Assembly: GCA_904063045.1 (NCBI GenBank)
Contig: CAJFCJ010000009.1
Coordinates: 1,550,968 to 1,614,967 of the forward strand
Length of the DNA: 64,000 bases
Direction of reading: 5' to 3'
Source of the DNA: Dimorphilus gyrociliatus
Taxonomy: Eukaryota > Animalia > Annelida
A model generated the notes under the pieces. It was not told the origin of the DNA, searched no databases, and saw nothing but the letters and a program-made list of their open reading frames with translations. This document shows positions 3,647 through 38,917 of this stretch, in pieces (the first letter of the stretch is position 1; each line of letters opens with the position of its first letter). A program made the position numbers and the translations under genes.

Positions 3647-4760
3647 TTAAATTTCGAGGTGGGACAGTTTGTCTATACAATCTTCAGGTTCTGCAGTGTA
3701 AAAAAATAACTGACATAGAGGATCTTTGAAAAAGTACTGTAGATATTTCTGATGTTGAATAGACCATCGTTTATCTTCTAAAAGATCTACTCTTATCTTT
3801 GCGATAAAGTTTGTTAATCGTAATAATCTCGTTTCGTACTTATCCGTATATATTCCTTTCAAGTATCGAATAAAACTGACCAATATTCTATTATATAGTT
3901 CAGCAAAATGAGGCTTTTCTCCTCCGGACACAAGGTGTAGAGAATATAAGAAGACAGCTTCCTCTTTGGAGAGGTTTATCTCCTTGATATCATAATATAA
4001 AGTTGTTAAAACTTGGACAGTTTGGTTATCTAGTACATGTTTCATTCGTTCACATTCAATTTTTAGTATTCTATCATTAAAACCAAAGTAAATATTTTCC
4101 TTGTCCAAATAGAATAAAGGATACATAACATCTAAAATATATAACATATCTGCATTCTTAAAAGAGATACTGATAAGATCTTTAAGCTTTAAATCTGTCA
4201 TTCCTGGTAAACTTCTTGAAAAGATTAATGAATAACGATACCAAATATTGAATAAAGTTTCTAAAAAATGTAAGAATCCTTTACGATCATCCAATTCTAA
4301 ACCAGTTACCTCTAATATATCTGAATATTCGTTAAATGGTATATAAATATTCTCTAGGGATGTTTGTGCGTTTTGAAATTGTAAATCAAAATTATGAATT
4401 TCATCTGACCATACGATATTTGTAAAAATAGTTGTAGCATTAGTGGTTTGTATGAATATATCATCAGCATCTGAATGACTTAGCATGGAATATACAGTAG
4501 ATTTTCGACTTTGTAGCTTTTCTGCGAATTTTAAATTTTCTTCTCTTCGCTTCTTGGTATACGGTCCTATTTTTATTCCTTTTGTTGACATTCCCTCTTT
4601 AACGCATTTATTAAAACGGCAAGCTGAACACTTGAATAAAAAATTATCTGCAGGTGAGCATAGATTTCTCCCCCTTTTGCATTGATATGGAGTACTTCTT
4701 TTAAGAGATCGTCCGTAGAAAACTTTACAGGCTTCGCAGGTGTAAACTCCATAATGAAAC
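3647..4760 (-). CDS. NR terminal cassette C1 (most distal): rest of DBD + hinge + LBD
   Basis: Acceptor ttgtttttag|G at 4760; FHYGVYTCEACKVFYGRS; 1114 nt (3n+1); lacks the first CxxC; AATAAA ~25 nt after the stop. Confidence 0.9.
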
Positions 4761-5156
4761 CTAAAAACAACAATAAACACTAGTTATATTTGAAAAAGAT
4801 GGTCCACAAGTAAATTCGTTTGTGATTATATTATGAAATTTGAAGATTATTATAGAAGAGAACTTTGGATAGAACATACAATCAATCGTCTATATATACA
4901 CATATCTATTTATATATTATATAATTATGCCCATTTAGTTCACTGTTAAACTAAACAATTGTAACAATTCCAAGGTATTATATCAGTTTAAAACATTTTA
5001 ACAATGAATACGATAGTATTTTATAAGACAATTTTTATTAAAGTTTCCGTTAGTGATTACTATTTTAATATTTAAAAAGAAAGAAACAACAAAATTATCA
5101 TTTATAGTTGATTGGCTATCGTAAGTTGTAGTTAAAGAAGAAAACAATGTAACTTT

Positions 5157-6279
5157 TTAGATATTTATATGACAATTATTAAGTTCCGTTACGCAATCAT
5201 CTACGCCTTGTGCATGCATGAATAATCTACAAATACTGTCACTATACATGTAATTTACATATTTTGAATTTTTTATACACCATTTTTTATCAGAATAGAA
5301 TTTTTCTTTCAAAATTGCTAGGGAATTAACAATATCCAAAAGTCTCTTTTGATAATCTCCTCCGTTTGTACTTTGTAAATATCTTATAAAACTTGATGTC
5401 ATTCGTGAATGTGCCTGTTTAAGTTGCGGCTGTTTACTATCAGATACAAGATTCAATGCATAGATAAATAAACTCTCTTCCATTGTAAGTTTTAAATTAT
5501 CCAGTCGTTTGTGTATACTTTCGTGAAGCTCAACATTTTTTTCGTCGCTAAGATAAACCATTTTAGACTTTCCCAAAGTGAATACTTTGTCATTCAAATT
5601 GATAACGAGGCAATCGGTATTCCAATAGATGGCGGTGGTCGCCAACATTAATATGTATAGCAGGTCAGTAGATTTAACCATATGTAGAAGAAAATCTTTC
5701 GTACTCAATTCTGACATTCCTGGTAATTTTCTTGCAAATGCTAAGATTCTTCTATACCAGTAGCCTAATAGTTGTTGTGAAAAATGTGATAGTACTTTAC
5801 GATCGTCTAATTCTAAACCAGTTTCTTCTAAAAAGTCCATAAAGTAATCCTTTGGAATTAATGCAAATTCTTGCGTTTTCAAGGCGTCGAGAAATACTTG
5901 ATCAAAATTTGATATCTCTTGTGACCATACAACGCTCCTTATCTCGGAAAATCCGGTAGTGGCTAATGTTAGGATATCATCAACATCTGAATGCATTAGG
6001 GGATGAGGAACGTTCAATTTGCTTTTTCTCCAAAGTTCAGCTATTACTTTACTATTTTGAATTCGTTTGTGACGGCTATATGGTCCTAATTGCATGGAAT
6101 CTCTCGACATTCCAAGACTCAAGCATTTTTTGTAACGGCATAAGGAACAGGCGAAAGTACAATTCCTCGATGGGGAGCATAAATGTTGTCCTGTTTTACA
6201 CTTGTACTGCAAGTTCCTTTTGGAACTTCTACTGAAGAAGACCTTACATGCTTCGCACGTATACGCTCCGTAATGAATG
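5157..6279 (-). CDS. NR terminal cassette C2
   Basis: Acceptor atcctacgcag|C at 6279; IHYGAYTCEACKVFFSRS; LBD signature FARKLPGMSELSTKD; 1123 nt. Confidence 0.9.
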
Positions 6280-6625
6280 CTGCGTAGGATAAATTAAAAG
6301 ATAATGGGTGTGGTTTAAAAAAAGAAAAATACATAAATCATTAAGTCAACAAATAAGACCAAACTATAGACCTAACCCTAACCCTTTAAATCAAGCCATA
6401 GCCAACAGATAATAGATCATAGAACAAAAAGTTAATATTATTTACCAATTGTAGTTTTATAAGAGAATGGGGTCAAGTTTTTGACCAAAAATTTCACAAA
6501 GTTTATTGATTAAGTTACAACGGCAAAAGATATTGATAGTTTTACATAAAGAAAACGCTGTACTACCCAATTTACGATCAACGATACATTAAAAGTTACA
6601 TTTGTGTGGTATCTCTTATCTAAAT

Positions 6626-7751
6626 CTAGCTAAATAAATTCAATTTCTTCAAAATGGCTATCGAATGTTCCATATCTTCGAGAGAAAAGCAGACGGCCCT
6701 CATCAATTTTGTCTGATATAATAATTTTACATATTCCTTTTCTCGTGATACCCACTTTCTTTTATTCAGTGAATTTTCTTTAAAATTACTAATAAAGTTC
6801 ATTAGCTGTCCAAGTCTTTGGTGAGAATTGTTTCCGTAACGACATTCTAAATATCTTGATAAAGCTACAGTTAGACGATCATGAGTTGTCTTGAAGTGAG
6901 GATGTTTTTTAGTTGGATAAAACAAATCAAGTGCAGTTATGATTATAGCTTCCTCCATTGTCAGGTTAATGTTAGCCAGGCTTTGAACGCTATCTTGATG
7001 GAGTTGTACAACAGATTCGTCTGTTAATTTGCTAATATTCTCTTTATCTATATTTAAACTTTGATCTTTTAAATTAATTACAACTCCATTGTTTTCCCAA
7101 TTCATTTTGTTTTTGATTGAATCAAGAAGCTGGAAATCATCTTGATTCTGTAAAACAATCCTAAAGAAATCATCCTTTGATAATTCACTCATTCCTGGTA
7201 ATTTAAGTAACGATTTTAAATAAAACTTAATTGCTACTAATGTATAAGCTTCGGTAAATTGGAAAAAGACTTTTCTATTGTCGAGTTCTACGCCTGTTGC
7301 ACCGTAGATATCCATATACTGATTCTGATTGAACATACCTTCTTTAATAACTTTCTTTGATATAGAGAATAAATCATCTAATCCCTCTACACTATCTCTC
7401 CAATCTGATGTCATAAAATCGGAAAATGAGTTGTTGCAAATTAAAATGATATCTTGAGCATCGCTATGATTTAATAAATAAGGTATGCTAGATCTCTTTT
7501 GGTGAAGAATAGCTAACTGTTCCTTATTTTTCTTCAATCTTTCTCTTGAATATCTGCCTATTTTGATAGCAGTTTTTGACATGCCAACTTCAATGCATTT
7601 CTTGTATCTACATAATTGACAAATGAAGGAGAAATTCTGACTTGGAGAGCATTGGTTCCTCTTTGTGTAGCAAACATATCTCTGATATCTATCAAAGCTT
7701 CTACGAAAAAATACCTTACATGCTTCGCAGGTGTATACTCCATAATGAAAG
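6626..7751 (-). CDS. NR terminal cassette C3
   Basis: Acceptor tttttccag|C at 7751; FHYGVYTCEACKVFFRRS; 1126 nt. Confidence 0.9.
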
Positions 7752-7960
7752 CTGGAAAAAAAATGAAATCCTTATGGAATTGCATTTTCATATTTCTTAA
7801 AGATGAATAGACAACGCCTCTGTTATTCGTCATTAAATATATACTGAATATATATATAATCTATATTTCAACAAGCACAACAAGCTACTACAATAATTAA
7901 ACAATACGAAAAGTAAATAATTAAAAAAGAAAGGGATGGAAGGAGGCGAAAATTACAATT

Positions 7961-9080
7961 TTAAAGTTTAAGATCTTGTAACAATGCAGCAGCTTCGTCT
8001 ATATTTTCCATTGTGAAGAAAGCTTTAAAAACTTTGTTACTTTCTCGTTTATTTATGTGAGGTTTATGTTTCCTCAACCACTTTTTCATGTAGTAACGCT
8101 TTTCTTTTAAAAAACTGTCTAAATTTATTAGCTCGCTAAATCTTAAATGTTGATTTTTATCGTATCTACATTCAAGATATCTTATAAAGGCTAACATGAC
8201 TCTGGATCGAAGAGTTTCCAATTGGGGGAATTTTTGTGCTGAATTTAGCATATGAATTGCAACCAGAAAGGTTGCTTCTTCGTAAGTAAGATGAGTTTCG
8301 GTAATACGATTATCATGTTCCTGTTGAATCTTCAAGCCTTGAAAATCGCATAATTTAATGAAATCTGTATAATCCATAATCATAGAATGTTTGCTATCTA
8401 TATTCATTATAAGCGTGTCGTCTTGCCAATGATTTCCCGATATAACTGAAAGTAGTAGATAATAATCACCGTAATTACTTAAAACAATCCGATAAAAGTC
8501 TGCCATCGGTATTTCATTCATCCCTGGCAAACACTTAATTGATCTGAAGAAATGTTTTAAAGAAACGACTGCTATATCTTCAGAAAATTGAGCGTGTGTC
8601 AGTCTATTGTCCAATTCTATTCCTGTAACATCGTAAATATCGAAGAACTCTTGTCTATCAAATGACGCTTCCTTTAATGACTTTTCTGCCATTTGATTCA
8701 ACAGGTCAAAATTTTCTATTTCGTCATTCAAATCTCTTATGAAAAATTCTGAAAAAGACTGACTACATCTTATTGTAATATCTTGAGCGTCACTATGTTG
8801 CGGTAAAAAAGGAACGATTAACTTATGATATTGTGCTTGAGCGTGACAGAGTTTATTTAGCTCTGTTCTCTGCGTGGAATATCTTCCTATTTTAATTTTA
8901 TCCTTTGACATGCCTGCTTCCAAACACCTATGAAATCTGCAAAACTTGCAGACAAAAATAAACTTTTCATTTGGACAGCATTGACGTCTATTAGTAATGC
9001 AGGAGTATTGCTGATGTTGTGTTAAGCTTCTCCGAAAGAAGACCTTGCACGCTTCGCACGTGTATACACCATAGTGGAAA
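7961..9080 (-). CDS. NR terminal cassette C4
   Basis: Acceptor cgtttttcag|T at 9080; FHYGVYTCEACKVFFRRS; 1120 nt. Confidence 0.9.
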
Positions 9081-9256
9081 CTGAAAAACGATTGATACAT
9101 TTTCATTCTTATCAAAAGATTCTTTGATTCAAATAAACTTTTATGTTCAAATTTGTACGGAAACAAAGAGAAACGAGTGTTAGTAATTCTTTTATCGCTC
9201 ATGATATGTATATTCTAATATAAATATAAAGGTATACAGTGTATGTATATATACTA

Positions 9257-9278
9257 ATATATATATATATATATATAT
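9257..9278. repeat. (AT)n microsatellite in the C5-C4 spacer
   Basis: Read directly; similar short tracts at ~1773-1788, ~35557-35576 and ~51031-51066. Confidence 0.8.
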
Positions 9279-9400
9279 CATTACGATGTTTACAACTTAG
9301 TTTTCGACGTGTAAAAAGACACACTACATAACTTGCTATGAAAGTTGAACTACTAGAAATGACTACAAGTGACATATTTATGAAATAGATTAATAGTATT

Positions 9401-10520
9401 TCAAATATCTAGTCTGCTTAGAATCTCAACTCCTTCATCAAGATCATCGATTACGGAAAAAGCTTTTAATAAATCCGTTTTGTACATCTTTGTGAAATAT
9501 TCTTCATTGTTCTTAACCCATTTTTTCTGTCGAAGATTATCCTCTCTAAAGAATGCAATTGTTGAAATAAGCTTCTGCAATCTTAAGTGATAATTACTTC
9601 CGTAGTTTTCTTCAAGATATTTAGTAAAAGCAAACATAAATCGTTGATAGAAATCTTGGAAATGTGGTTGACATTTTGTTGGACTGAGCATAAAAATAGT
9701 TGTGAGAAATATAGCTTCTTCAAATTTCAGATTAACTTCTGTTAATTTAATACCGCGTTTGTGTTGGCTCTCCGCAATTTCTTTATCAGTCATTTTAACC
9801 ATATAATCACTTGGAAGTAAAACAGAACGTTGATTACCCAATTGAAAAGCTAATCCTTCCGGTGTCCAATTTGCTTTTGATGCAACTTCAATGAGTACGC
9901 AAAGATTTTCCTTATGACTTAGAATAGTTTTATAAAAATCTTTATGATTCAGTTGATTTAGACCAGGAAGTCGTCTGAGACATCTCATAATTCTCTTGTA
10001 TAAAACTTCAATAAAAATTTCAATGAATCTGGTATAACTACTTCTATCATCAATCTCTATTCCTGTAACTTCTAAAACATCCATGTATTCTTGTTTTGTA
10101 TAAATACCACTAGACATTGAATGTAATGCTCTGGAAAATATATGGTTAAAATTTTCCACTTCTAGTGCCCAGTTTTCAACTAATAAATCTCTGAAAGATT
10201 GGTGGCATATTATGATCATATCTTGCGAATCCGAATAAATTGATAGGTATGGTACCATTATCTTTTTCATTTCAATATTGGCTAATTGCTGCTTGTTTTC
10301 TTTATGTCTTTGCTTTGTATATCTTCCTACTTTAGTTTTAGCCCTAGACATTCCTACGTCTACACATTTGTTGTATCTGCACTGCTTGCAAGGGAATAGG
10401 TAATCTTTGTCAGGGAAACAATGACCCTTTTGCGTGATACAGACGAAGCTTTCATATTTCTCCTTGCTTCTACGGAAAAAAACTTTACAGGCTTCACAGG
10501 TATAAGCTCCATAATGAAAA
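9401..10520 (-). CDS. NR terminal cassette C5
   Basis: Acceptor ttttttgcag|T at 10520; FHYGAYTCEACKVFFRRS; 1120 nt. Confidence 0.9.
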
Positions 10521-10987
10521 CTGCAAAAAAAAGGATTTTCCACTGATATCCATGAAAGCGAAATGTAAATGTGCCAAAAAATTAGATCGAAATAAAAACA
10601 AAAAAGTTAAGATAGACGAAAATCTCAGTTACTACAAAATGGACTTAAATGGATAGCTCATGGTATTCTATTTTAACAATGAAAATTGTCGGCCATCTTT
10701 AATTATTGAGTAGTAATAGAACAATAACAAAATAACAATATTCCCCTACAAAAAAGGTGTTAGCTCTATAATGGAAATTGCAACAACTGTTGAAAATTTT
10801 CTACAAGCCTTTTCTTTTTATTGAAAACTTAAAATCTTTACAAAATTAACGAGATGAACAATTTAGGGCAAAAAGAAATGCGAAAATAGTGTTCACATCT
10901 TAACTGCATCATAGAACGTTTCAGATCTCAACTACAATAGCTAAAATAGCGGTAAAGATCAATAGAAGTTATATATTATAGTTTGTT

Positions 10988-12107: not shown

Positions 12108-12355
12108 CTGCAAATAAAGGAATTTCCAATACATTCTCTAACTTTTCAAAGATTAAGAAGTTAAAACTTTAACAAATACATCTAATAAGCTTTTCTTTAC
12201 GATGACTCTTATAGTATAGATTGATTATAATTGAACAACTATATCTTTTACATAATCTATGATTTTGATGAATATCTGTATTTTTTTTACAAATAATACA
12301 AATGATAAAAGACAGTTTGGACAACATAACTCTATCACTTCGCAAAACCGTTTGC

Positions 12356-16453: not shown

Positions 16454-17573
16454 TTATAGAGTAAGATTCATTAGTAGCTCTACAGCTTGTTCAAGTTTTA
16501 AATTCATAAAAAAGATTTTCATTATATCACTTTGATATATAATGTTAAGATATTCCTCGTTTTCAGTCATCCAGTTTTCTAGTAAAAAGAAACTTTCCCT
16601 CATAGATGCCATCAAATTTACAAGTTCTGCTAGCCTGACGTAATATGTTTTACCGTAGTTGGCTTCCAAATATCTAGTGAAAGCCAGAGTCAATCTCTCA
16701 TGAATACCTTTGAGATTAGGATACTTTTTTATTGGAGTGCTCATATTTAAAGCTATCATCAATATTGCCTCTTCATAAGTAATACTAGCGTTAATTATAC
16801 GATTGGTATTCTCTTCATAGGCTGTGGCTACCTGATTACCAGACAAATTATTTATATCGGATTTATTAAGGCTAATCTTATATTTATCATTTAAATTGAT
16901 AATTAACTTTTCTTCACTCCATAAATTTCGTAAGGCAACTGTAATTAATAGGAACATATCGTGTTTATTCCTAAGAACAATTTGGTAGACATCTTCAAGA
17001 GATAAACTATCCATGATTGGTAAACTCCTTATAGCGCTAAAGAAAACTTTAAATGAAGTATGCATAATTGATGCTGTAAAGTTAACGAAAGCTTTTCGAC
17101 TGTCTACTTCAATTCCAGTTACCTTATAGATATCCATATATTCATCTTTACTAAACGTACCTTGATCGACAAACCCTTTAGCCTTATTATATATATCATT
17201 TAATCCTTGGATTTCGCTACCCCAATCAATATGGAAAAAATTGTTAAATGATGTTCTGCAAGCTATGATCATATTATGAGAATCTGTATACTTTGGTAAA
17301 TACGGAACAGATAATTTTTCCTTTTCAATATGAGTTAATAAGAGATCTTTTTGTTCATGCATTCTCTTTGAGTATCTTCCTATTTTAATATTTCCTCTGG
17401 ACATTCCTACAGCCAAACACTTTTTATATCTACAAAATTTACAGGAGAAAGCATAATCGGTATTCGACACACATTGTTTTCTGTTTGTAAGACACACATA
17501 ATCGATGTATTTCTTTGAACTTCTAGTGAAGAAAACTTTACAACCCTCGCAGGTATAAGCCCCGTAATGGAAG
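16454..17573 (-). CDS. NR terminal cassette C10 (P-box CEGCKV)
   Basis: Acceptor gttttttccag|C at 17573; FHYGAYTCEGCKVFFTRS; 1120 nt. Confidence 0.9.
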
Positions 17574-18209
17574 CTGGAAAAAACGAAGTCATATGGATTT
17601 TTAGTATATTATAAAAAAAGTTGACAATTCATTTTTTCCAACATATTAGAATAATGAAAAAGAAGTTGATATATCAATTGATAGGTTTGGGAAAAGTGAG
17701 AAATAGGCAAACAGTTATAATATTATCTATTATTGAATATTTTTTAAAGTATTTGATATGGTTATACTCTATTTCTGTGCCTTTCGTTACTATATTTTCC
17801 CCTTTTTTAATATCTAGACACTCGAACAAAACTAAACACTTTTTTACAAACTTACAAAGTATATTGACTCAGTTAATAGAATCTTGGTGTGAGTGATAAT
17901 ACAACATAAAGACAGAAGGTGAATTTTATCTAAAGTTCTTTTAATCTTTTCAAATTGTTCAGATCGTTATATGTCGCAAAATATCGGCAAAACTGTTTAT
18001 TCATAAAAGTTTGTCATAAAACTTGTGAAAGGAAATGCAATTATCCTTTGCAAACATATTTAGCATAAAAATAAAGAAAGGAATAGTGAATAAACTTTAC
18101 TATTTCACTTATTTAACGAATTACAAACAGTGCTGTTAATAAGTTATCATTTGGTATTTAGACTTTAATCATTAACAATAGTCATTATAAAGAAGAGAAC
18201 AGTTGTATT

Positions 18210-19338
18210 TCACAGTTTTAGGCTTTTCATTTCTCCAACAAGTGATGTTGCTTTAATATGATGCGAAAGTAAATTATAGAAGAGGGGAGATTTACAAAAT
18301 GTCATAAAATAATTTTTTGATTTTGACAGGAGAAAACCTTTACGATTGTTGAATACTCGCTCTTTATAGGTACTTAGAGTTGATATAATTTGAGCCAGCC
18401 TTATATGATACCTACTACCGTATTTATTCTCAAGATATCTGGTAAAAGCTAATGTGAATCTTTCATATATACCGTGAAGTTGTGGATATTTAGTTGTGGG
18501 TTTAAGAAAATTAAGAGTAGTGATAAAAATTGCTTCCTCAAATGTTATATGTAACTGCGACAGTATCTCTATTGTTTCTTTTTGACTATCTAGTAGGTTT
18601 ACATCTACTATTTGTGCTAAGCTCGACTTAGGTATATTAAGAGTAAGGTTATCATCAAATGGAATGGCCAAGGAATCATTTTTCCAGAGTGATAGCGAGA
18701 AACTAGCCATAATCAAGTTTACGTCTTCTAGGGACTCTAGAGCTTTTGAAAAAAAATCTTCAGGCTGTAGTTCTTTGGCAATAGGCAAATTTATCAACGC
18801 TTCTGAAAATCCGTTAAATACAGTTGTTATTATCATTTCAAATAATTCAGCGAATACGCGTCTATTGTCTATTTCTACTCCAACTGTTTCGTATATGTCC
18901 ATAAATTGCTCAGAATTATAAAGATGATCATCAAATACTTCATTAACCCTTAAGACTTTTTCCCTAAGGCCGTCAACTTTCGTGGTCCAGTCTTTAATTG
19001 GAAATAAAGAAAAACAATTTTGACATAAAACTACAATATCTTGTGAATCGCTACCAATTGGAAGATAAGGTATATTTATGGATTTGTTTTTTAGGTCTTT
19101 TAGAGTTTTCCTATTCTTTTCATGCCTCTCTAACGAATATCGTCCAATTTTTATGCTATCTTTGGACATTCCAATCTCAACACATTTATCAAATCTACAC
19201 TTTTTACAAGCAAACCTAAAGTTTTCACCCGGAAAACATAAATTCTTCTTAGTTACGCAAACGTAGTTTGAGGGCCTTGTCAGACTTCTTCGATAGAATA
19301 TTTTGCAAGCTTCACAAGTATTTGCCCCATAATGAAAG
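18210..19338 (-). CDS. NR terminal cassette C11 (P-box CEACKI)
   Basis: Acceptor gtttttttccag|C at 19338; FHYGANTCEACKIFYRRS; 1129 nt; only 100 bp from the C12 stop. Confidence 0.9.
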
Positions 19339-19440
19339 CTGGAAAAAAACGTAAATCTGCTTTTCATTCATAGTTTTATTTTAAAAGAATAATGTGGAAC
19401 GTCAGAGAAAAAAAATGGACAAAGACTAATAAAAGTTATG

Positions 19441-20569
19441 TTATGAATTAATTATTTCACAAGACTTTAACATATTGAGACATTTATCATAATCCGCTTC
19501 AAATAGTACGTCTTTAACTAATTTAGTACGATAGAATGATTTAATATAATCCATATGTTCAATAATGTTTTTAACTCCATGAAAGAGTTGCACTTTAGTA
19601 TAACTTACAAAGTCAATTATTTCAAATAATCTTTTATGATAGTTTTTACCGTGTACAGATTGAAGATAGCGTGTAAATGCCAAAGTAAATCTTTCGTATT
19701 GTCTTTTAAAATGTGGATTTTCAACAGTTGGTTTTAGAGCGTTAAGGGCAACTATGAATGCTGTTTCTTCAAATGTCATATTTATATTTTGAGCACGAGA
19801 ACTAATCTTTTCTTGACATTGTACTAGTGATTCATCTGAAAAGTTAACGATATCTTCTCTAGAAACCTCTAAAGAATGATCAGCGTCAAGATTTATGATT
19901 ACTCTGTTATCTTTCCATAGAGCCCCTCCTGAGCAGGCTATTATAAAATGAATTTCATCTTTCTGAGCAATGACTACTCTACAAAATTCATCAAAATCAA
20001 GATCGTGCAAAGCGGGTAAACTTCTCAAGCCTTGTACAAAACGAGTTAGAACAGTTTCATGAACTTGTTCCATGAATTGCATAAAAACACGTCTTCCATC
20101 AATATCAGTTCCTGTTACCTTATAAATATCCATAAAATCATTTCTTGGAAAACTACCTGATTCTAAACTCTGCACTGCCTGCTTAAATTTTTGTTCAAAG
20201 CCTTCCATTTCATTATGCCAACATATATTTAAAAAAAATGATAAAGAGTCTCTACATTTGATAATAACATCTTGCGAATCCGTATAATTTACTAAATACG
20301 GAACTGTTTGTTGTTTTCTACTTCTCTCAACCAACATTAATCGATTCTCAGCATGTCTTTCTTTAGAATATCTCCCCATTTTTATAGACGTTTTAGACAT
20401 TCCCACCTCTAAACATCTAGCATATCTGCAATATTTACAAACGAACGTAAAATGATTCGTAGGATTGCATTGTTGCCTCTTATTAATACAATAGAAACCA
20501 CTGGACTTTCCGCAACTTCTCCGAAAGAATACTTTACAAGCTTCGCATGTATACGCTCCATAGTGGAAG
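19441..20569 (-). CDS. NR terminal cassette C12
   Basis: Acceptor attttttacag|C at 20569; FHYGAYTCEACKVFFRRS; 1129 nt. Confidence 0.9.
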
Positions 20570-20828
20570 CTGTAAAAAATAAAACCTTCCTTGCAAAAAA
20601 TTCATTTCACTAAGATATTTACAATCTAACAATAAGCCACTCTATTGAAAAAAAAACAGTTGATTCTGCTTCTCATTCCTTTATTAGTGGGAAAATAAAA
20701 CATGCAATATAAACTTTACAGCCCGTCCAGTCGTTTATAATATCAACAATCCCTTATCTTTTTGTACAATTCAAAATTGAAATTGTATAATCAAGTATTT
20801 AATTAATCAATTATTTATTAAATAACAA

Positions 20829-21939
20829 TTATTCATTGAATAGTTTACGCACATCATTAATATTATTCAAAGTAAAAAGTTGTATACAGAATCCATAACC
20901 GTTAATTTCTTTAAAATAATCTAAATTGGTATTATACCACTTACAAATACATTTAACTAAATTTCTTAGAAATGATACTGTATTAACTATTTCTAATAGT
21001 CTACGATGATACGAATTACCATAATTATCGTTAAGATAACGAAAGAACAATAATGTAAATCTATCGTGTAATTGTTTAAAATGGGGAAATTTCTTATCAG
21101 GATTTAACATCTTTAAAGTAAAAAGAAAATATATCTCTTCAAATGTCAATTGTAGATTTGTTAATTTAGTTAATTGATCTATTTCAATTTCAACTAATAC
21201 TTTATCAGTTAAATTTGAATAATCATAGCTATTTAATGCTAAATGATGATCATTATCTACTTTTATAGTAATATTTTTACCATCAGCAGAAAATCTACTG
21301 GCCATATTAATAAATATGATAACATCATCGAAATACTTGAAGATAATTTGTAAAATATCGTCTTTTGAAAGACTTTCATATCCTGGAAAACTATTTAACA
21401 TTGTAACAAGCTGTTTAAAACCAAATTCAACAATTGTGTTGATAAATTGAAAATAGTGCTTTCTATCATCAATTTCTAAACCAGTTAATTTCAATATATC
21501 TAAATATTGTTCTCTTGAATAAGAATGTCGATTTACTAAATTTTCAATTCTAATGAAATTACTTTCAAAATTTTTAAATAGAGAATTAAACTTAAAACTA
21601 TTAATTTGGTCAAAGAAATTTGAACATCTTATAATAAGATCTTGAGAGTTTGTATCATTTAAAAGAAAAGGTATTGCTCGCTTCTTTCTTTCGATAGTTA
21701 GTAGATAATTTCTATTTTTTAAATGTCTTTCTCTTGTATATCTTCCATGTCTAATAGCGTTCCGAGACATTCCAACCGCAATACACTTTCGAAATCTACA
21801 CGATTTACACTTGAACCGAAAATCGGAGGAGGGAATACAGTTATTTCGCTTAGAAATACATTTTTCCAAGTTTACACTTCTAGAAGATCGTCTGTAGAAA
21901 GTTTTACACGCTTCGCAAGAATGACATCCATAATGGAAA
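20829..21939 (-). CDS. NR terminal cassette C13 (P-box CEACKT)
   Basis: Acceptor tgttttccag|T at 21939; FHYGCHSCEACKTFYRRS; 1111 nt. Confidence 0.9.
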
Positions 21940-22198
21940 CTGGAAAACAAAATATCACAGTTGCAGTCATCCTGTTTTTTTTAAAACCAAAATATCTAAG
22001 CGATAATCATAAATCACTTTTGTTTCTTTGTATAAATTTATAATTTATTTAAATTTTAAAACAATCTCTCAAAGCAGAAGTTACATACTTTTCTCTTTAA
22101 GCGTTTATACAATTTATCCTATACTTTATAAATAAATTGATAAATAGTGATGTAAATACAGAAATAATAACATATGAATATTAAATATTTAATGTATA

Positions 22199-23321
22199 TT
22201 ATAGTGCTAGAGATTGTAAAAGGTTCATAGTTTCCCTTATATCCATATCTAACCACACATGGCGGAGAAGTTCAGGTCTACAATGGATTGTGCTTAAATA
22301 TTCAAAATTGTTAGCAATCCATTTATCTCCAATTAGATATGCTTCGTTGAAATAGCTAAATAGATTCATCAATTGAAGAAATCGTAAATAGTATTTATTT
22401 GAATATTGACTTTTTAAATATCTTGTAAATGCAACTGCTAATCGATGATGAAACTCTTTAAAATGAGGAAACTTTTTATTTGGTGAAAATAGTCTTAAAG
22501 CTATTATTAAAAGTGCCTCTTCAAAAGTAATGTTAGCCTCCGTGATACGAATACAAGCTTCTTCTTCCAAATTAACCGCTTGATCGTCTAATAGGGATTC
22601 TAAAATTTTCTTTGGTACTTTTAATTGATGTTTATCATCGAAATTAATTATAATGATTTCATCTTTCCATATAATTCCACCAACAACATAGATAAGAAGT
22701 TCAATGTCATGTTTGTGTGCAAAGAAGACTTTGTAATAGTCTTCTTCGCTTAAAATATCTAATCCGGGGAGCTTTTTTATACATTTCATAAAGTGTAGGA
22801 ATGAACTAACGATTATAGAATCTATAAGACTAGAAAATCCTTTTCTATTATCAATCTCAATGCCTGTAACTGAAAGTATATCCATAAAATCATTTTGTGG
22901 GAAAAATCCTTCTTCAATTAGTCTAGCGGCATTCTTAAATTTTATATCAAAATCTTTAATGGTACTCTGCCAATCCAAGTTTAAAGTTTCTGAGAATACA
23001 TTTGAACACATAATAATAAGATCTTGCGAATCGGTTTGATTAAATAAATAAGGTACTTTTTCAGATTTAGCTTGTGAATTCTTAACGTACATTTGTAAAC
23101 TTTTTAATCTTTCTCTTGTTGTCCTTCCTATTTTGGACGAATTTAACGACATTCCGATCGCAAGACAGCGTTTAAATCGACAAGATCTACATATAAATTT
23201 CATTTGTTCTGTTGCTATACATGCATTATCGTTAGCAATGCATTTCAAATTATTTGGACGTAGTACAGTTCTTTTGAAGAAAGCTTTGCATGCTTCGCAA
23301 GTATACGCTCCATAATGATAA
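22199..23321 (-). CDS. NR terminal cassette C14 (P-box CEACKA)
   Basis: Acceptor ttttttgcag|T at 23321; YHYGAYTCEACKAFFKRT; 1123 nt. Confidence 0.9.
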
Positions 23322-23767
23322 CTGCAAAAAAAATTTCTTCTTGCAATCTTCCTTATGAAATGTTTATACAGTATTAAATACAATGAGCACATATACACCT
23401 CAATATTTCGTCACTATAATAAATTAATAGGAATGTTTAGAGACGAAAATCGAATAAGACTCATATAATCTATTTTATAATCACTAAACGAAGATCTTAT
23501 AAGTCCCGCAAAGATTTGAAAACTGGACAAATAAATAAAACCACTGTTTATAACACTAGATTACAAATGATAAAAGAAAATTGATGGTCAAGGTGACTTT
23601 TTTTCATTATTTATTATGCAATTAAATAAAATGTTCACTATTGATAATGTAATAAAGTTAAAAATAGAGTCAACACCTACTACCATTACAACGTCGATCC
23701 AACAAACTATGAATATCTACTGAAGCAATTTTCAAAATTCATGTGGCATAAAAGCTTCTACGAGGTA

Positions 23768-24914
23768 TTAAACCTCCACTGAAACGCGTTTCATTTTGCA
23801 TGACAGCAAACTAACAGTTGAAGAAAAATCTTCGAAATTGTGTTCGGTCCAGAACTTTGAAAAGCAACCACCATTATCAATTTGATTGACATAGTCTAGA
23901 TTCTTTGTCACCCATTTGCGAAAAAATAGCGATGTTCTCTTAAAAAGTGCTACAAAGTTTACAATGCTTAATAATCTTCTGGGATAAGAATTACCATAGG
24001 TACTTTCAAGATACCTGGTAAATGCTATTAGGTAACGATTATAATATAATCGTAAATTTTCGTTTCCCTTGATTGGATTGAGGAGACTAATTATAAGTAG
24101 GAAAATTGATTCTTCAATAGTAAAATTAAGATTTTGAATTGATTGAAGGACGGTTTCTTCGGAAATGACAAAATTAGCGTCTGTTAAATTCTTGAAATCA
24201 TCTTTTTTAAGGGTTAAAACGTAACCATCGCCTAAATTGCACGAGAGACCATCTTCAGTCCATATTAATTTGCTAGTTGAGCTGTTAAATATTTGAATAT
24301 CATCTTTATGGGAAATAAGAAGGTGAAAAAACTTCTCGTCGCTTAGTTCTTTTAATCCCGGTATTTTACTAACTGCATTAATGAAACGTGTTGATGATAT
24401 TTCCATAACACTATTTAATATGCTCATAAACGACTTTCTATAGTCGATTTCAAGACCAGATACTTGAAATATCTCCATGTAATCGTTCTTTGGAAATATT
24501 CCATCCTCACAAACGGCAGACGCGTTTCTGAATTTTGTTTGAAAATCAGATATTTCTTTACTCCAATCAATCTTAACTGCATCATGAAATATATTCATAC
24601 ATTGTATGATTAGATCTTGGGAATCCGTATGATTGATTAGATATGGTACCGTTTTTTTACTATTTTCAATTCTTGTTAATAAGATTTTGTTTCTATTATG
24701 TATTCGCTTAGTGTATCGTCCAGTCCTTATGGCATGTCGAGACATTCCAATATCTAGGCATTTTTTAAATCTACAAGCCCTGCATTGAAACCGAAAATCG
24801 GGTGCTGGTGTGCAGACTTTACGTTTTGTAACACATTCATAATCTATCGAACTCTTCAATGATCGTCTAAAGAAGACTTTACAGGCTTCACAAGTATAAC
24901 ATCCGTAATGAAAG
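23768..24914 (-). CDS. NR terminal cassette C15
   Basis: Acceptor ttattttacag|C at 24914; FHYGCYTCEACKVFFRRS; 1147 nt. Confidence 0.9.
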
Positions 24915-31464: not shown

Positions 31465-32578
31465 TTAAGAGTTCAATATCTGTTTATATAACTTGATACA
31501 TTCATTTTCATCATTCAATACCCAGATTTTAGTGACACGGTTGATATTTTTTAGAAGATGTAGATTTTGCAAAATCCATTTACGGCCATAGTGATATTGT
31601 TCCTTAAAGAGTGATAATAAATTCATCAGTTGTAATAATCTTTTATGGGACCGAACTCCATATGTGTTATCTAAATATCCTTGAAAAGCGACGAGAAACC
31701 GATTTTGTAATACACGAAATTGTGGACACCGACTATTCGGAGTCAGTATGTATAAACCTAATATGAAAATTGATTCTTCATATGTTATGTCGACTTCTGC
31801 TAAAGTATCACAATACTTTTTAGTCAAATCAGCAAGACTAGAATCACATAAATTTTCAAAATCTTCTCTTCTTAATGTTAACGAATGATCTTTATCTAAG
31901 TGATATTCTACAGTATCATCTACCCATTTAAGTCTTCCTGTGAGTGTTAGAAAGAAACGAACGTCGTCTAGGTGGTTGTGTATATTCAAAAAAAATGTTC
32001 TATCATCAAGATCCTCAAAACCGGGAAAACTTCTTAAACTTGAAAGAAATTTTTTCATTCCTTTTTGAATCATAATATCCATCAAGTCAAGAAATTGTTT
32101 TCTGTTATCTATTTCTACGCCTGTTACATTCATAATATTATAAAACTCATCTTTCGCATAAAATCCTTGTTTAAATGTTGCTGATACAGTTGCGAATAAT
32201 TCCTCGAAATTATCTATCTCTTTTCTAAGGTTTAAATCAAAGAATGGAGAAAATACATTTGTGCAGCGTATGAAAATATCTTGAAAATTTGAATTCTTTG
32301 GCAGGAAAGGAATAACTTCTTGTTTTTCTTTCAAATTTACAAGACTTGCAGCATTTTGCTTAAGTCTTTCATTACTATATCTTCCCATTTTAATTGCTTT
32401 TTGAGACATTCCTACCTCAATACATTTTGAAAATCTACAAGATTTGCATAAGAATGCATGATTTTCCAATGGAACACAGAGGCCCTTATTAGTTATACAA
32501 GGATAGGGTGTGAGCATTTTTTTTGATCTTCTGAAGAAAACTTTACAAGCTTCACAGGTATAGACGCCATAGTGTAAG
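31465..32578 (-). CDS. NR terminal cassette C20 (young subfamily)
   Basis: Acceptor ttgtgtttcag|C at 32578; LHYGVYTCEACKVFFRRS; 1114 nt. Confidence 0.9.
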
Positions 32579-33056
32579 CTGAAACACAAAAATTAAGTCC
32601 CAAATTTTCACAATGAGAAATCTCTTCTAACTTAGTTATTGTCTAGGTATTCTTTTTCGAATAATTTCACGCATAAATTGTAAATAAAGACATAAAGATA
32701 TTGTTGATATATAATTAACTATTATACAGCTGATGAGGAAAGCGGAGTGCATAATTTTTTTTATGAAATCCAACAAAGGATGCGTTTATCTCTATATTGT
32801 AACATTCAGTATAGAATGCGGAATATAAGGTAGCAAATAAATTTATAGGGAACAAAAACTTTCAATAAATGTTCCTCTCCAAACAGGATTAGTTGAAACA
32901 AGCTACTTGATCTATAAGAGTGACACTTTTTAACGATTGACTTGTAAAGTGATGGAAGGGGAATAAGACAATATTAACCCAAAGGATTGAAAATTTGACC
33001 ATAGCGGTTGAATATAAAAACAAACAGCTTGAAGCTTATTCGGATTGAATCATTGT

Positions 33057-34179
33057 TTATTTCTTTAAGTTTAAGCTTTTAATCATTTTAATACTATCGT
33101 CAATATTTCTTTCAATAAAAAAATCTGTTGAAAATTTTGAAGGAAATTTTTTACAATATTCAATATTTTGTTCAGTCCATTTTTTGGTATGTAATAGCCT
33201 CTCTTGTAGGACACTGTCAAGATTGACTATCTCGGCTAATCTCCTTTCGTACTTGCGACCATAAGAATTTTCTAGATAATTGGTAAAAGCCATCAACATT
33301 CTATTATATATTTCATGAAATTGTGGAAAGGTTCGATTCGGTTTAATGACGTTTAAAGTAATTATTATACAAATTTCATGAAAGCTTAGATTTACATTAG
33401 AAGTTCGGCGTAGCAGTTCTTCTTCACCAGCTAATAAAGTTTCATCGCATAAATTAGCAATGTCTAATCTTTGCATCTCAAGTACATATTTATCGCTGAA
33501 TTCAATACTATAAGAACGTTCACTTAAAGTTACACCTCCGAAAAGTAAAGTAGCATAATTTATTGCATCTTTTGACATTGCTAAAGCTAATAGAAGTTCC
33601 TCCTGTTTTAGATCACGCAAACCTGGTAGTAACATTATTCCCTCAAAAAATCGAGTAACTGCATGCTTTACTAACTGTTCTGTAAAAGTACTAAACACTC
33701 TTCGATTATCGAGCTCTACACCAGTGGCCTCGTAAACGTCCATATAGTCTTCTTTTGAAAATGTTCCTGTTTGGCAAAATGATCTGATTTGTTTGAATAT
33801 CTCATCAAAATTTTGAATTTCTTTTTCCCATTCGATTTTATTGAAGGTTGAAAATGATTTGCAACAGCAAACAATAAGATCTTGCGCGTCTGAATGTTTT
33901 GGCAGAAACGGAATAATTACGTGTTTCCTATCTAATTCCTCAACTAAACATTGATTTTGTCTACGTTTCTGAACAGTATATCTCCCTAATTTTATCGACG
34001 ATTTAGACATTCCAACTCTTAAACATCTATCATATCTACAAGATTGACAAAAAAATCTGAACTCTTTAGTTGGTAAGCATTGCCTCTTTTTTCTCACACA
34101 TTTATAATTTTCAAATTTTGACCAACTCCTACGGAAGAAAACTTTACAAGCCTCGCATGTGTTTGCTCCATAATGATAG
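33057..34179 (-). CDS. NR terminal cassette C21
   Basis: Acceptor attgtttcag|C at 34179; YHYGANTCEACKVFFRRS; 1123 nt. Confidence 0.9.
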
Positions 34180-34395
34180 CTGAAACAATAATATGGCCTG
34201 CATTTGTTTGTTTTAACTTGTTTTTGTTTTCATAAAGATTCTTTTATTTCAATTACTATATTCAAAAACGGAATATTTAGACATTTATAACACCATGACT
34301 TGAAAAAGCGCGGCAAAATGAAGCAGAAAACAATGCAAGCAGACTAGGGAACGATTCAAATAAAATCATAATGCATTATTGAACAAATATAGTAC

Positions 34396-35506
34396 TTAAA
34401 CTAATTGCAGCTGATCAATTTTATCAATACATGCTTCTAGATCTGCTACTCCCCAAAGGCACAAAAGGAGCTCGCTACTATACATATATTTCAAATAAGC
34501 TGTATTTTCTTGCCAATATTTAGATATTAGCTTTTCTTGTTCATTCAAATATGCTAAACTATTTGCAATGTTCAATAAGCGTGTATGGAAATTTTCTCCG
34601 TAGGTGCTATGCAAATATCTATGAAAACTAAGAAAAAGTCTATTATTTGCTTCTTTTAGAAATAAGAATTTCTTATTTGGAGTTGTTAAGTTTATAGCTA
34701 GAATAAGCATGACTTCTTCGGGTGAAAAATTAATTTCTGACAAACGTGTAAAACAGTCGCTTTGAATCTCAATGACATTTTTACCAGATAAGTTTTCAAA
34801 ATCTCTTTTTGAATATTTTATCGTTTTATCTTTGTAAGTAAACTGTGTGTCATGAGAGAAGAATCGGCTCATACCGATATTGAATGCTAGTGTCACTAAA
34901 TATTTATTCTGAAAGAAAATCTGTAAAAAATCTCTTTTTGATAATTTATTTAACCCAGGAAATGTGCTTGTAACTTTCAAAAGTTTTGTCAGAGAAACTT
35001 CCATAAATTTCTCAGCTAATTGCAACATAAATTTCCTACCATCTATTTCAACCCCTGCAACAGTTAATACATCCACATATTGGTCATAAGAAAACGTTCC
35101 CTTGTGATTATGATACAAAGCTGCATCAAATAACGTTTGAAACCCTTGAATTTCAGAATTCCAGTCAATTTGTTTTAGATCAGTATAAGCATTCACACAC
35201 CTAACTATAATATCATCTGAATCGCAAAACTGAGGTAGTAAAAGCGGCTGATTGCTAAGTTTGTTTAACTTCATTTTATTATACATCTTTCTTTCTTTTG
35301 TGTATCGACCTATTTTTACAGAAGTTTTAGACATGCCTATTGCCCTGCATCTATGGAGTCTACATTTTTTGCATGCAAATATAAAATCACTTCTAGCGAT
35401 GCATTGACCCCTTTTGTTCACACATGCATATTTGGATGTATCATCATTATGTCTCCTCCGAAAAAATACTTTGCAAGCTTCGCACGTGTATGCTCCATAG
35501 TGGAAA
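34396..35506 (-). CDS. NR terminal cassette C22
   Basis: Acceptor tattttccag|T at 35506; FHYGAYTCEACKVFFRRR; 1111 nt. Confidence 0.9.
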
Positions 35507-35700
35507 CTGGAAAATAATGAATCTAAATTGCAATGAAAGATCTTTTCAAATATAAACTATATATATATATATATATTAGTATATATATTGCTTTGTTGCA
35601 CTTATACTTTTTTCTCAAATTTTGATTGAAGTTTATTGATTAATTGAACACGTTGATAAATATAAAGACTACAACTTCTCTATTTTTCTTCATTATCAAT

Positions 35701-36820
35701 TCAAAACAGTTCAAGATTTTCTAATTTTTTTATATTTTCTTCTAAGTTACCAACTTGCCATAGACATTTAAATATGTGACGATCGTAAACATAATCAAGA
35801 TATTTAACATTCTCTTTCCAATACTTTTGTATTATACTTGATTGTTCATTAAAATAAGCTAGTGAGTTAACTATAGTAAGTAGACGATTGTGATGTTTCG
35901 ATTCGTACTTATTCTTAAAATACCTATCCATAGTTAATAGTATACGATTATTTGCAGCAGATAAATGGGGAAATCTTTTTTGTGGTCTAGTAAGGTTGAG
36001 TGCAATTAAAAGCACTAATTCTTCGGTAGTTAAATTAAGTTTTGTTAATTGCCTATGACATTGTTCCTGTATCTCAACTATCTTTTTATCGCTGAGATTT
36101 ACAATATCACTTTTATTTACTTTCAAACAGCTCTCATCTAATTTCAATTCATATTTATCTGCCTGCCAACTTTGTATCATTATAAAACTGATAGCTATAT
36201 GAACTATGTTTGAATTCAAAAAGAAATTCATCAGGAAGTTCTCTCTTGATAATTCCTTCATACCTGGAAATTGCTGAGTGTTTGCTAATAATCTTTTAAC
36301 GGCTACTTCTAAGAATTTCTCTGATAAATTTGATATGTGCTTTCTACCGTCAACTTCAACGCCTGTTACTTCAAGAACGTCCATAAATGTGTCTTTGGAG
36401 AATGTACCACACTTAGTCTCATTCATGGCAGTATTAAGTTTAAATTGAAAATCTGCTATTTCCTTATTCCAACTAATACTTTGAATATTATTGAAAATAG
36501 TAGAACATTCTACTAATAAATCATCGCAATCCGTAAAATTCATCAAATATGGTACTTTCGATTGTTTATATTCGATCGTATCTAACTGTGCTTTATTTGA
36601 AAGTTTTCTCTTGTTGGTATACCGTCCTATCTTTATATTACATCTTGCCATACCGACTTCCACACATTTATTATATCTACATTGTGAACAATTGAATAGA
36701 AATTTATCTGATGGAAAACATTGATTTCTGCCGTTCAGACAAAGTATTTCTGTTTTTCTATTCTTAATACGACGAAAAAATACGTTGCAGGCTCCACAAG
36801 TATAAGCTCCATAGTGAAAA
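35701..36820 (-). CDS. NR terminal cassette C23 (atypical P-box CGACNV)
   Basis: Acceptor cctcttcttag|T at 36820; FHYGAYTCGACNVFFRRI; 1120 nt. Confidence 0.88.
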
Positions 36821-37093
36821 CTAAGAAGAGGAAAGACGATATATTCTTTAAAAATATTCAGATATTTTAGATATATATGTATTAAAAATTTGTACTCATA
36901 ACAATGTCATATATATATTATTTGCATAATAAACAATTCCATTCTTATGTTGAACTATAAATCTATTTTAAAAAACGATAGATATTAATATAAAAAAATA
37001 TGACTCATTGGAATTTTTGTCTAAATACACGTTTAGCTATGTCGAAATATGTGCCATATGTTTCACAAGAGAACAAATTGAACAATTCTTGTA

Positions 37094-38225
37094 TTACGAA
37101 ATTTTCAATGTCATTAATGAATTGATAAGGGAGGTTGCATTTGATTCAAGCCATAAAACTTTGGACAAATCATCGTCAAATAAATAATTATAATAATCAT
37201 ACTCTTCTTTCCTACAGTTTTTCCTTTCAATTAAACCCTGTTCTCTCATATTTGATATGAATTTTACTATTTGAAATAATCGTTTATGATAAAATTTTCC
37301 GTGCCTACTCTCCAAATAGCGTGTGAGAGCAGACATTATATGATTATGAATAGCTTTAAGATGTGGATATTTTTTTCTAGGTGTACATAAAGTAGCAGCA
37401 AATAATAAAACTGTTTCTTCATAATTTAATACTATTTCGTCGAGATCGTTGTGGAAATGCTCCTGATTGTGAACGGTATTTTCACCTGATAAATTATACA
37501 ATTGGGCCTTGTGTATAGCCAACTCGTACTCTCCAAATTTCATTACAGAGTAATCATCTTTAAAATAATGAGTACTTGATAGATTTAATACAAGCGATAG
37601 ATCGTCGGGCATTCTTAATATATTCATAAAAAAATCTCGTTTGTCTAATTCTAACATACCGGGTAGTTTAATGACTATATTTAGTAAACGGTGAAAGCTT
37701 GTTCTAAGTACTTTCTCCCCTAGTGAAATCATACATTTCCTACTGTCCATTTCAACTCCTGTTGTTTGCAAAATGTCGTTGAAAGCCTCCCTGTGTATCA
37801 TATTGTGTGAAAAGATATTTGAGATTTTATTAATATCATCTCTTAAGCCCTTAATTTCTTTTGGCCAATCAATATTCATCATATCGGAAAACAATACTGA
37901 AAATGTGACAATTGTATCATCAACCTCGGTATAATTAAACAGATAAGGGACTAAGAGCTTTTTTTGGTTAATATCGTTAGCTATCTTATCATTTTCCAGG
38001 CGCTTCTCCACGCTATATCTACCGATTTTGGCAGCTTTTTTACACATTCCTATACTAATACATTTATTATATTTACAAGATTTACAGGTAAATTTGTAAT
38101 CTGTAGAAGGATTGCATAAACCTCTTCCAGTTTGACATTTCACTAGAGATGATTTCCTATCAGACTTCAATGCTCGATAGAAAAAGGTTTTGCAAGGGTG
38201 ACAAGTATTTGCTCCATAATGATAG
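37094..38225 (-). CDS. NR terminal cassette C24 (most proximal; atypical P-box CHPCKT)
   Basis: Acceptor atttaaacag|C at 38225; YHYGANTCHPCKTFFYRA; 1132 nt. Confidence 0.88.
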
Positions 38226-38909
38226 CTGTTTAAATTGAAATTTGTCTAGAATTAAGATCAATAGGGTAATTCCAAATGACGTATGAATATATTATTCTCA
38301 TTTCTATTTATATACACATTACCAAGTAAACTGGTTCAATAACCTGAACCTGGTAATTTGTATAATGGACCTATTAACTACCTTTTACAAAAGAAAGAAA
38401 ATTTGTGTTGTTGGCACAAACTACTAAACAGCGGTGATAATTTCCAATCTTATTTATCACATTAAATATAGATAGTTACTTTATCAGAATGAATAGCTGG
38501 CTGTTATCAATGATATTTTAGGATAACTAGTATTGATTAAATTTTCTTTACAATAAAATTATTTTCATATTTTTGGGTTAAATATCAAAACATATTTTTT
38601 ACATATATATTTACGAACAGCCGACAGTCATAACAATATAAATTAATTAAATAAAATGTTAACGACTTGCGTGAATGATAATTTAAAGAAAACGAGAAAT
38701 ATTCTATTTTGTCTATAAGACTTAAAGATGGCGGTTTTTACTGTGGAATACTTTCTTTTACAATTAAGATTGTCTCGACAACAAAGCTTTATAAAACACT
38801 AACAATCGCAAATCGATTTAACCTCTCGTTGGAGGTAAGAATATATACAGGACTAACAAAACGAATATCACCCACAAAAATCAATTGTGTACACGAATAC
38901 ATAAAGTGT

Positions 38910-38917
38910 ACATACCC
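38910..38917 (-). other. Phase-2 5' splice site GG|GTATGT of the shared NR exon
   Basis: The minus strand reads TCT GG|GTATGTAC. Its phase complements the 1-nt overhang of all 24 cassettes. Confidence 0.85.

Follow-up and report, generated by a model that had tools for sequence, protein, structure and literature searches.

In Drosophila, the lola and mod(mdg4) loci consist of common 5' exons followed by arrays of 20-30 alternative 3' exons (PMC13490949, PMC4387717, PMC6237743). Here we describe a locus of comparable layout that encodes nuclear receptors in the annelid Dimorphilus gyrociliatus. It was studied in a window of 64,000 nucleotides, the whole stretch of DNA analysed (contig C9:1550968-1614967 of a 77.9-Mb assembly), and comprises, on the minus strand, one 5' exon (exon 1) and an array of 24 downstream units, here called cassettes and numbered C1 to C24 in order from exon 1. 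Where contig C9 (the contig of this locus) and contig C15 (that of a sister locus) are meant, they are named as contigs. As in lola and mod(mdg4), there is a constant 5' part with one donor, followed by many tandem 3'-terminal exons on the same strand, each with its own acceptor and stop codon. Likewise, the variable part bears the DNA-binding zinc fingers, giving one locus for a family of transcription factors.

The locus also differs from the Drosophila loci. Their proteins combine a BTB domain with C2H2 or FLYWCH fingers, whereas the proteins here are nuclear receptors and exon 1 has neither a BTB/POZ domain nor any other Pfam domain. The constant part is a single exon (71 codons plus GG), the splice cuts through a zinc-finger module of which neither half would fold alone, and the variable part is almost the whole protein, including the ligand-binding domain (LBD). 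Trans-splicing of mod(mdg4) transcripts is aided by an intron motif that binds U1; a search of the donor intron of the array did not find this motif. We treat the likeness as an architectural analogy between genes, not as family membership.

Isoforms of the nuclear receptors RAR, EcR and E75 arise from alternative promoters and N-termini, and TR-alpha and GR have C-terminal variants. The usual view is that one nuclear-receptor gene encodes one core of DNA-binding domain (DBD) and LBD, and that its isoforms differ only at the ends. The present locus resembles these genes in that several proteins would come from one gene by alternative exon use. However, the isoforms known among receptors keep one DBD-LBD core and differ in the N-terminal A/B domain or at the extreme C-terminus, whereas here the A/B region is constant and the core is swapped 24 ways.

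In the clustered protocadherin and UGT1A loci, the variable exons are first exons, each driven by its own promoter, and the constant part lies 3' of them. These loci share with the present one the tandem, large, single-exon variable units attached to a shared constant exon set, and an evolution by unit duplication and birth and death. They are nevertheless its mirror image, as here the only evident promoter belongs to the constant exon, which lies 5', and it is the variable units that are terminal. A short 5' sequence placed before many head-to-tail units with very short spacers also recalls the spliced-leader and operon systems of nematodes and Oikopleura. Unlike spliced leaders, which are short, non-coding and made from multicopy SL RNA genes, exon 1 is single-copy and protein-coding, lies in cis, and contributes the ATG together with part of a domain. 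The genome paper detected neither spliced leaders nor operons in D. gyrociliatus, and it stresses conservative regulation, 66-bp introns and the absence of operons and of trans-splicing (PMC7854359).

A literature search gave no report of such an array in nuclear receptors. The array of alternative 3'-terminal exons is thus a design known elsewhere and new for nuclear receptors, and it is unusual in that the splice runs through a zinc finger and nearly the whole protein is exchanged.

Exon 1 and the 24 cassettes

A six-frame scan of the window for the motif xHYGxxxCxxC gave exactly 24 matches (Table 1). All lie on the minus strand, and their first codons run from 38224 to 4759. Before each match come a pyrimidine-rich tract, then AG, then a single base, which is C, T or G. 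The distance from acceptor to stop codon is 1111-1147 nt and is 3n+1 in 24 of 24 cassettes, leaving open frames of 369-381 aa. The coding part of exon 1 consists of an ATG and 71 codons with the ending TLPPCQVCGGPSS (CQVCGGPSS), then GG, and its donor is of phase 2, with GG in the exon and GTATGT in the intron. GG plus the phase base (C, T or G) encodes Gly at every join. Counted on the sequence, the six residues of GGPSSG and the seven of xHYGxxT set the spacing between the second and third Cys at 13 and would rebuild C-x2-C-x13-C-x2-C.

An earlier note on this DNA, made by reading the letters, had described acceptors with one trailing base, cassettes of 3n+1 nt with open frames, and a common codon position that restores an exact finger; all three descriptions hold for the full set of 24. 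It was also right that exon 1 ends in GG. The end position that it gave, 38917, is off by one, since the last exon base is 38916 and 38917 is the first G of that GG.

Exon 1 is single-copy: a genome search with its peptide returned one copy on contig C9. Against Pfam, exon 1 alone matches no domain, including zf-C4, as expected for a sequence with only 10 zinc-finger residues. The cassettes are complementary in this respect. The zf-C4 profile (Pfam PF00105) matches all 24, in each case only from profile position 13/14 to 70, and the six remaining zinc-finger Cys are invariant among them. In DgyrCDS6098, a public full-length paralogue with two exons that aligns with the assembly at 100% identity and so ties the genome to D. 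gyrociliatus, the zf-C4 match spans positions 2-70 across an exon boundary at residue 56/57. The positions missing from the cassettes are therefore those that a first exon supplies.

A profile search of the PDB with the cassettes recovered nuclear-receptor DBDs only, the best being those of RAR, Rev-erb and ROR, and did not match the LBD. Pfam Hormone_recep (PF00104) reaches E<1 in 4 of 24 cassettes (best 2.6e-5), and the LBD is too diverged for sequence methods. An AlphaFold (AF2) model was made for C1 only, from the alignment of the 24 cassettes (predicted local distance difference test score, pLDDT, 79). In a fold search it matched the intact PPAR-gamma and the LBDs of VDR, EcR, RAR and LXR with probability 1.0 and template modelling (TM) scores up to 0.72. 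Each cassette is thus predicted to encode the rest of the DBD, including the P-box, followed by the hinge, the LBD and the stop codon, the LBD fold being that modelled for C1. The cassettes differ from one another by about 70% in protein sequence. The P-box is mostly CEACKV, with exceptions in C1, C2, C11, C12, C14 and C15.

We found one constant 5' exon with a single donor, and variable units that have no private 5' exons. A scan of the array for CxxC-x5 followed by two bases and GT had as its sole match the exon at 38944, which is exon 1, and gave no other phase-2 CxxC exon with the x13 spacing. A relaxed scan of the 23 spacers (102-649 nt each, 7678 nt in total) returned 12 CxxC strings in any frame, none with the features of a first exon of this family. 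Other phase-2 CxxC exons inside the array, which in the terms of the earlier note would have refuted its reading, were seen in neither scan. As a positive control, the same script detected the own exon 1 beside 15 of 15 ordinary family members elsewhere in the genome, namely eight tandem genes on contig C15 (exon 100-230 nt upstream) and seven solo genes on other contigs (introns of 60-460 nt). Private exons are thus detected wherever they are present, and the contig C9 array is without them.

The acceptors are ordinary working ones and are not unusually strong. Upstream of AG, neither pyrimidine content nor longest pyrimidine run differed between the 31 shared-exon cassettes (those of contigs C9 and C15) and the 15 members whose private introns are short (Mann-Whitney p 0.44 and 0.30, respectively), and the notion that these acceptors are particularly strong was dropped.

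Three side observations concern the wider family. The phase base after AG is C, T or G in all 31 shared-exon cassettes, never A, and is A in 11 of 15 private-exon members; all four bases would encode Gly, and the bias may simply reflect phylogeny. For a copy on contig C5 (C5:16000-21000) the genome search reported an in-frame TAA, yet the cassette is open over 397 aa. Another copy, on contig C6 (C6:2063500-2069500), has TGA and TAG in frame and its cassette frame is shut after 44 aa, which makes it pseudogene-like.

Joins between exon 1 and the cassettes

The comparison with RNA covers one 6-kb stretch, 33200-39199, and two public runs, X1 and X2, both in the form of contigs. Exon 1 is joined to C1, C3 and C4 in these data. 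The X2 contig of exon 1 (38916-39194) stops exactly at the donor, 38916, where several spliced forms branch off. Its word depth is 1374, versus 58 on the contig that crosses the donor into the intron; an unspliced contig, 38197-38943, is likewise of low word depth. At the C3 acceptor, an X2 loose end carries 17 letters at 35507 that are the 3' end of exon 1 in reverse complement. The same holds for 11 letters at 34180 at the C4 acceptor, and C1 sequence hangs off the exon-1 donor as a loose end. Unbroken X2 contigs connect C1 with C2, and C3 with C4, across the spacer between them, and these fit read-through transcription.

Two further contigs suggest that exon 1 is also joined to C11, across a 15.6-kb intron, and to C13, across an 18.3-kb intron. 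In record 12 of X2 (1284 nt), exon 1 contributes 24 letters, and a single G on the plus strand links these to a cassette start with five mismatches to C3. Those five mismatches and the phase base C are unique to C13 among 46 family members, and the length of the record fits C13 plus the 102-nt spacer plus about 29 nt of C14. A contig of 395 nt from run X1 has 274 nt of exon 1 and then cassette sequence, of which the aligner put 42 nt on C4. Its next 30 letters correspond to C11 at 23246-23275, and the offset is exactly what a join of exon 1 to C11 would give. The longest word common to C4 and C11 is at most 14 nt, so a chimera made by assembly at k=31 is unlikely. In sum, the junction data cover the region of C1-C4 plus the contigs traced to C11 and C13, six of the 24 cassettes.

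The RNA library of run X1 is a metatranscriptome that bears the label coral metagenome (2024), and its transcripts are 95-99% identical to the locus over 34392-39185. A close strain or sibling species of Dimorphilus was evidently present in that coral sample.

Table 1. Features of the array on contig C9, in window coordinates, and the second locus of the family. Cassette lengths run from acceptor to stop codon.
Feature	Coordinates	Strand	Remarks
Probable 5' UTR	39131..39194	-	Transcript 5' end probably near 39194, from X2 contig 38916-39194 reaching adapter at 39194 (contig, not read ends)
Shared exon 1	38916..39130	-	ATG, acidic 60-residue N-terminus, LPPCQVCGGPSS then GG; first CxxC knuckle, zinc finger 1
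Intron, exon 1 to C1	38226..38915	-	690 nt; also the 5' portion of all longer introns, to 34,155 nt (C24)
Cassette C1	37094..38225	-	1132 nt; P-box CHPCKT
Cassette C2	35701..36820	-	1120 nt; P-box CGACNV
Cassette C3	34396..35506	-	1111 nt
Cassette C4	33057..34179	-	1123 nt
Cassette C5	31465..32578	-	1114 nt; young clade
Cassette C6	29968..31081	-	1114 nt; young clade
Cassette C7	28471..29581	-	1111 nt; young clade
Cassette C8	26708..27821	-	1114 nt; young clade
Cassette C9	25055..26168	-	1114 nt; young clade
Cassette C10	23768..24914	-	1147 nt
Cassette C11	22199..23321	-	1123 nt; P-box CEACKA; intron 15,594 nt
Cassette C12	20829..21939	-	1111 nt; P-box CEACKT
Cassette C13	19441..20569	-	1129 nt; intron 18,346 nt
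Cassette C14	18210..19338	-	1129 nt; P-box CEACKI; 102 nt from C13 stop
Cassette C15	16454..17573	-	1120 nt; P-box CEGCKV
Cassette C16	15056..16175	-	1120 nt
Cassette C17	13660..14785	-	1126 nt
Cassette C18	12356..13475	-	1120 nt
Cassette C19	10988..12107	-	1120 nt
Cassette C20	9401..10520	-	1120 nt
Cassette C21	7961..9080	-	1120 nt
Cassette C22	6626..7751	-	1126 nt
Cassette C23	5157..6279	-	1123 nt
Cassette C24 (last of array)	3647..4760	-	1114 nt; implied intron 34,155 nt
Second family locus	contig C15:79323-109248	-	8 tandem two-exon genes, then one exon 1 and 7 cassettes without private exons

Selection and the sister array

The cassettes are under purifying selection. The ratio of nonsynonymous to synonymous substitution rates (dN/dS) is 0.22-0.39 in the young clade C5-C9, at dS of 0.15-0.6. 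Across the array, the proportion of nonsynonymous differences (pN) is below that of synonymous differences (pS) in 276 of 276 cassette pairs, with medians of 0.45 and 0.72, respectively. For three intact cross-species orthologue pairs of cassettes from the contig C15 array that have no exon of their own, dN/dS is 0.13, 0.07 and 0.10. Values near 1 across the cassettes, which the earlier note had named as a refutation of its reading, are not what was found. The spacers have diverged past alignment, and AG, phase and frame are nonetheless kept in 24 of 24 cassettes here and in 7 of 7 sister cassettes, so their retention is not a matter of chance. The suggestion of that note that selection acts toward splicing to a common phase-2 donor is supported by the lack of any other phase-2 CxxC exon with the x13 spacing in the array, by dN/dS well below 1, and by the RNA-derived contigs that tie exon 1 to C1, C3 and C4 and probably to C11 and C13.

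A side observation in the young clade C5-C9 (25055-32578) is that pS is 0.154 in the DBD part versus 0.334 in the LBD part. The lower value suggests gene conversion or mosaic duplication at the 5' ends of these cassettes.

The sister array on contig C15 belongs to the same family and has the same phase-2 split. Its shared exon 1 has an ATG at 93160, the peptide CQVCGGNSS and the donor GTATGTAC; it is 50% identical to exon 1 of contig C9 and has the same donor. The sister array is smaller, with 7 cassettes versus 24, and includes a 2.5-kb gap between the cassettes at 85568 and 81881. It lies directly downstream of eight ordinary two-exon paralogues, which places both architectures side by side.

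Orthologues of cassettes 9-13 of the contig C15 locus occur in the same order at 1039-8525 of Logan contig L023 (SRR23372228, 27% GC), which comes from another species. Protein identities are 61, 72, 66, 78 and 43%, respectively, and there are no private exons between the units. The cassettes of the two species align and the spacers do not. Two of the five orthologues, those of cassettes 10 and 13, are broken (at 43 and 174 aa), so cassettes are gained and lost in the course of time. L023 ends about 1 kb upstream of its first cassette. Three further tandem cassettes, 180-233 nt apart, were seen on a contig of 4169 nt from ERR14224705 (P0009, P0006, P0016); the nearest cassette of the array is C16, at 50% identity, and they presumably come from a more distant dinophilid.

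In a maximum-likelihood (ML) tree of 45 family members, the genes with their own exon stand apart from the shared-exon cassettes. Within the latter, C1 groups with the first cassette of the contig C15 array (support 88), and C23 and C24 group with C15sh_11 of that array (support 95). Given these pairings across arrays, the related first exons and the identical donors, the shared-exon design is older than the split of the two arrays. Its growth since then has been by duplication of the cassette alone.

Probable cis-splicing, its alternatives and annotation

We consider it probable that the locus is one gene with a single 5' exon and 24 alternative 3'-terminal exons, most likely joined by cis-splicing. 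A single promoter and a 5' exon that provides the start codon, an acidic N-terminal domain and the first CxxC knuckle would serve all 24 terminal exons. The one phase-2 donor would be joined to one of 24 phase-matched acceptors, each time rebuilding C-x2-C-x13-C-x2-C, and the output would be up to 24 receptors with a common N-terminus and bodies about 70% different in sequence. A polyadenylation site is presumed after each cassette. The likeliest route would be cis-splicing of a primary transcript that reads through over a long distance, cassette choice being coupled to the formation of the 3' end. The array itself probably arose from an ordinary two-exon gene, behind which exon 2 alone was duplicated again and again. 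Cis-splicing is favoured because the cassettes all face the same way, downstream of the only 5' end in evidence, and because the spacers are transcribed; in spacers of as little as 102 nt there is no room for a promoter. We infer the use of the other 19 cassettes, joining in cis and not in trans, and the inclusion of one cassette per mRNA.

Several observations weigh against this reading. Splicing in this worm is adapted to short introns, with a median of 66 bp (PMC7854359), and introns of 15-34 kb would be exceptional. The polyadenylation signals AATAAA or ATTAAA occur in 19 of 24 spacers, which is about chance for sequence of 25% GC, and they were not counted as evidence. A search for docking and selector pairing, by complementary 8-10-mers between intron 1 and the 23 spacers, gave no excess over shuffles, although this was a crude test based on exact words without G-U pairs. 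The contigs come from 6 kb only and, as contigs, cannot show strand, ends or levels. Run X2 has no RNA record, and it was taken to be RNA because it has spliced joints and its word depth is very uneven. The joins to C11 and C13 rest on matches of 30-50 nt and on arithmetic, not on full contig sequence. Finally, C2 is covered by RNA-derived X2 contigs, with no junction to exon 1 found there.

In the main alternative, the same architecture would be served by trans-splicing as in Drosophila mod(mdg4), with a short donor RNA from exon 1 and with cassettes, or groups of them, transcribed from promoters in their own spacers. The arrays closest in design do use trans-splicing, mod(mdg4) exclusively and for more than 30 isoforms (PMC13490949, PMC4387717), and this route would spare introns of 15-34 kb where splicing is tuned to 66 bp. 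The X2 coverage of spacers fits outrons as well as it fits read-through. On the other hand, the cassettes follow exon 1 downstream in order and share one strand, and in spacers as short as 102-194 nt the upstream 3' end must already take up space, so that a promoter would hardly fit. Intron 1 lacks a strong extra U1-binding motif like the TSA motif of mod(mdg4): in a weak test, no match of at least 9/11 to the U1-complementary consensus was found in intron 1 or in the contig C15 intron. The first introns of the two arrays likewise have no common conserved sequence. The genome paper gives no sign of trans-splicing, having tested for spliced leaders only (PMC7854359). Overall, we regard joining in trans as unlikely.

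It is very improbable that only the few cassettes nearest exon 1 are real alternative exons and that the rest, farther away, are duplicates without expression or in decay, whose frames stay open because they are young or through gene conversion. Such decay would agree with the restriction of direct junctions to C1, C3 and C4, and with the two of five cassettes broken in the orthologous array of the other species. Recent origin sits poorly with a protein difference of about 70% and a median pS of 0.72, values at which all 24 cassettes still keep frames of about 370 codons, the zinc-finger Cys and the acceptors. Moreover, contigs joined to exon 1 have their best matches in C11 and C13, which are distal cassettes, and public RNA-guided gene models include C10, C11, C13, C14 and C15. 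The notion of 24 independent genes, each with an unrecognised private first exon, has next to no standing, for although a private exon 1 is the ordinary structure of the family (15 members), it is already contradicted by spacers that lack any CxxC exon with a usable donor, by the single copy of the exon-1 peptide on contig C9, and by the spliced contigs that tie cassettes to the shared exon.

With one cis-spliced gene as the preferred reading, one promoter and one N-terminal exon appear to drive 24 cores, and seven more at the second locus, that differ in P-box and LBD. This would make the locus an extreme and independently evolved counterpart of lola and mod(mdg4) outside arthropods. The small size of the locus and the culturable worm would permit direct tests of how one donor picks among distant terminal acceptors. 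More speculatively, and with rather long odds against it, we hypothesize a receptor-choice locus, in which each cell (for example chemosensory or xenobiotic-sensing) would commit to one of 24 (or, with the sister array, 7 more) bodies under a single promoter, with splicing and polyadenylation competing along a 35-kb transcript to make the choice. If so, it would be the nuclear-receptor counterpart of protocadherin or olfactory-receptor choice, and a large repertoire of sensors would be kept with minimal regulatory DNA in a miniaturised 78-Mb genome.

The public gene set does not recognise the shared-exon architecture. Chimeric models with multiple DBDs and LBDs cover about 16454-24914 of the window. 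One of these, DgyrCDS7638 (P0011, CAD5118975.1, 986 aa), fuses part of C13 with C14 and C15; another, DgyrCDS7639 (P0012, CAD5118976.1, 685 aa), fuses C10 with C11; neither includes exon 1. No public proteins of 207-658 aa were found from this window, the public models being longer fusions. Given the two chimeras, annotation-based counts of nuclear receptors and of multi-DBD receptors would be wrong. The D. gyrociliatus entry among the 2DBD receptors of PMC10497141 was also considered and set aside; it is CAD5121447, a different protein from CAD5118975 and CAD5118976. On contig C15, the public protein P0013 likewise fuses two genes that have their own exons.

Other genes lie on both sides of the array. 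Upstream, a plus-strand gene apparently starts near 39630, head to head with exon 1 (about 39195-39630 of the window), and the gap of about 430 nt between it and the 5' end of exon 1 is possibly a bidirectional promoter. Past the other end of the array, a convergent gene at 2163-3464 on the plus strand has an intron-free open reading frame (ORF) of 433 aa with a C-terminal SOCS box (E 8.5e-6), the remainder of the protein having no Pfam match. At 55532-58224 on the minus strand are cysteine-rich repeat ORFs of 415 and 392 aa, which have no Pfam match and show CxxC/TxC modules and a hydrophobic C-terminus; CxxC-rich frames extend to about 60.5 kb in the window.

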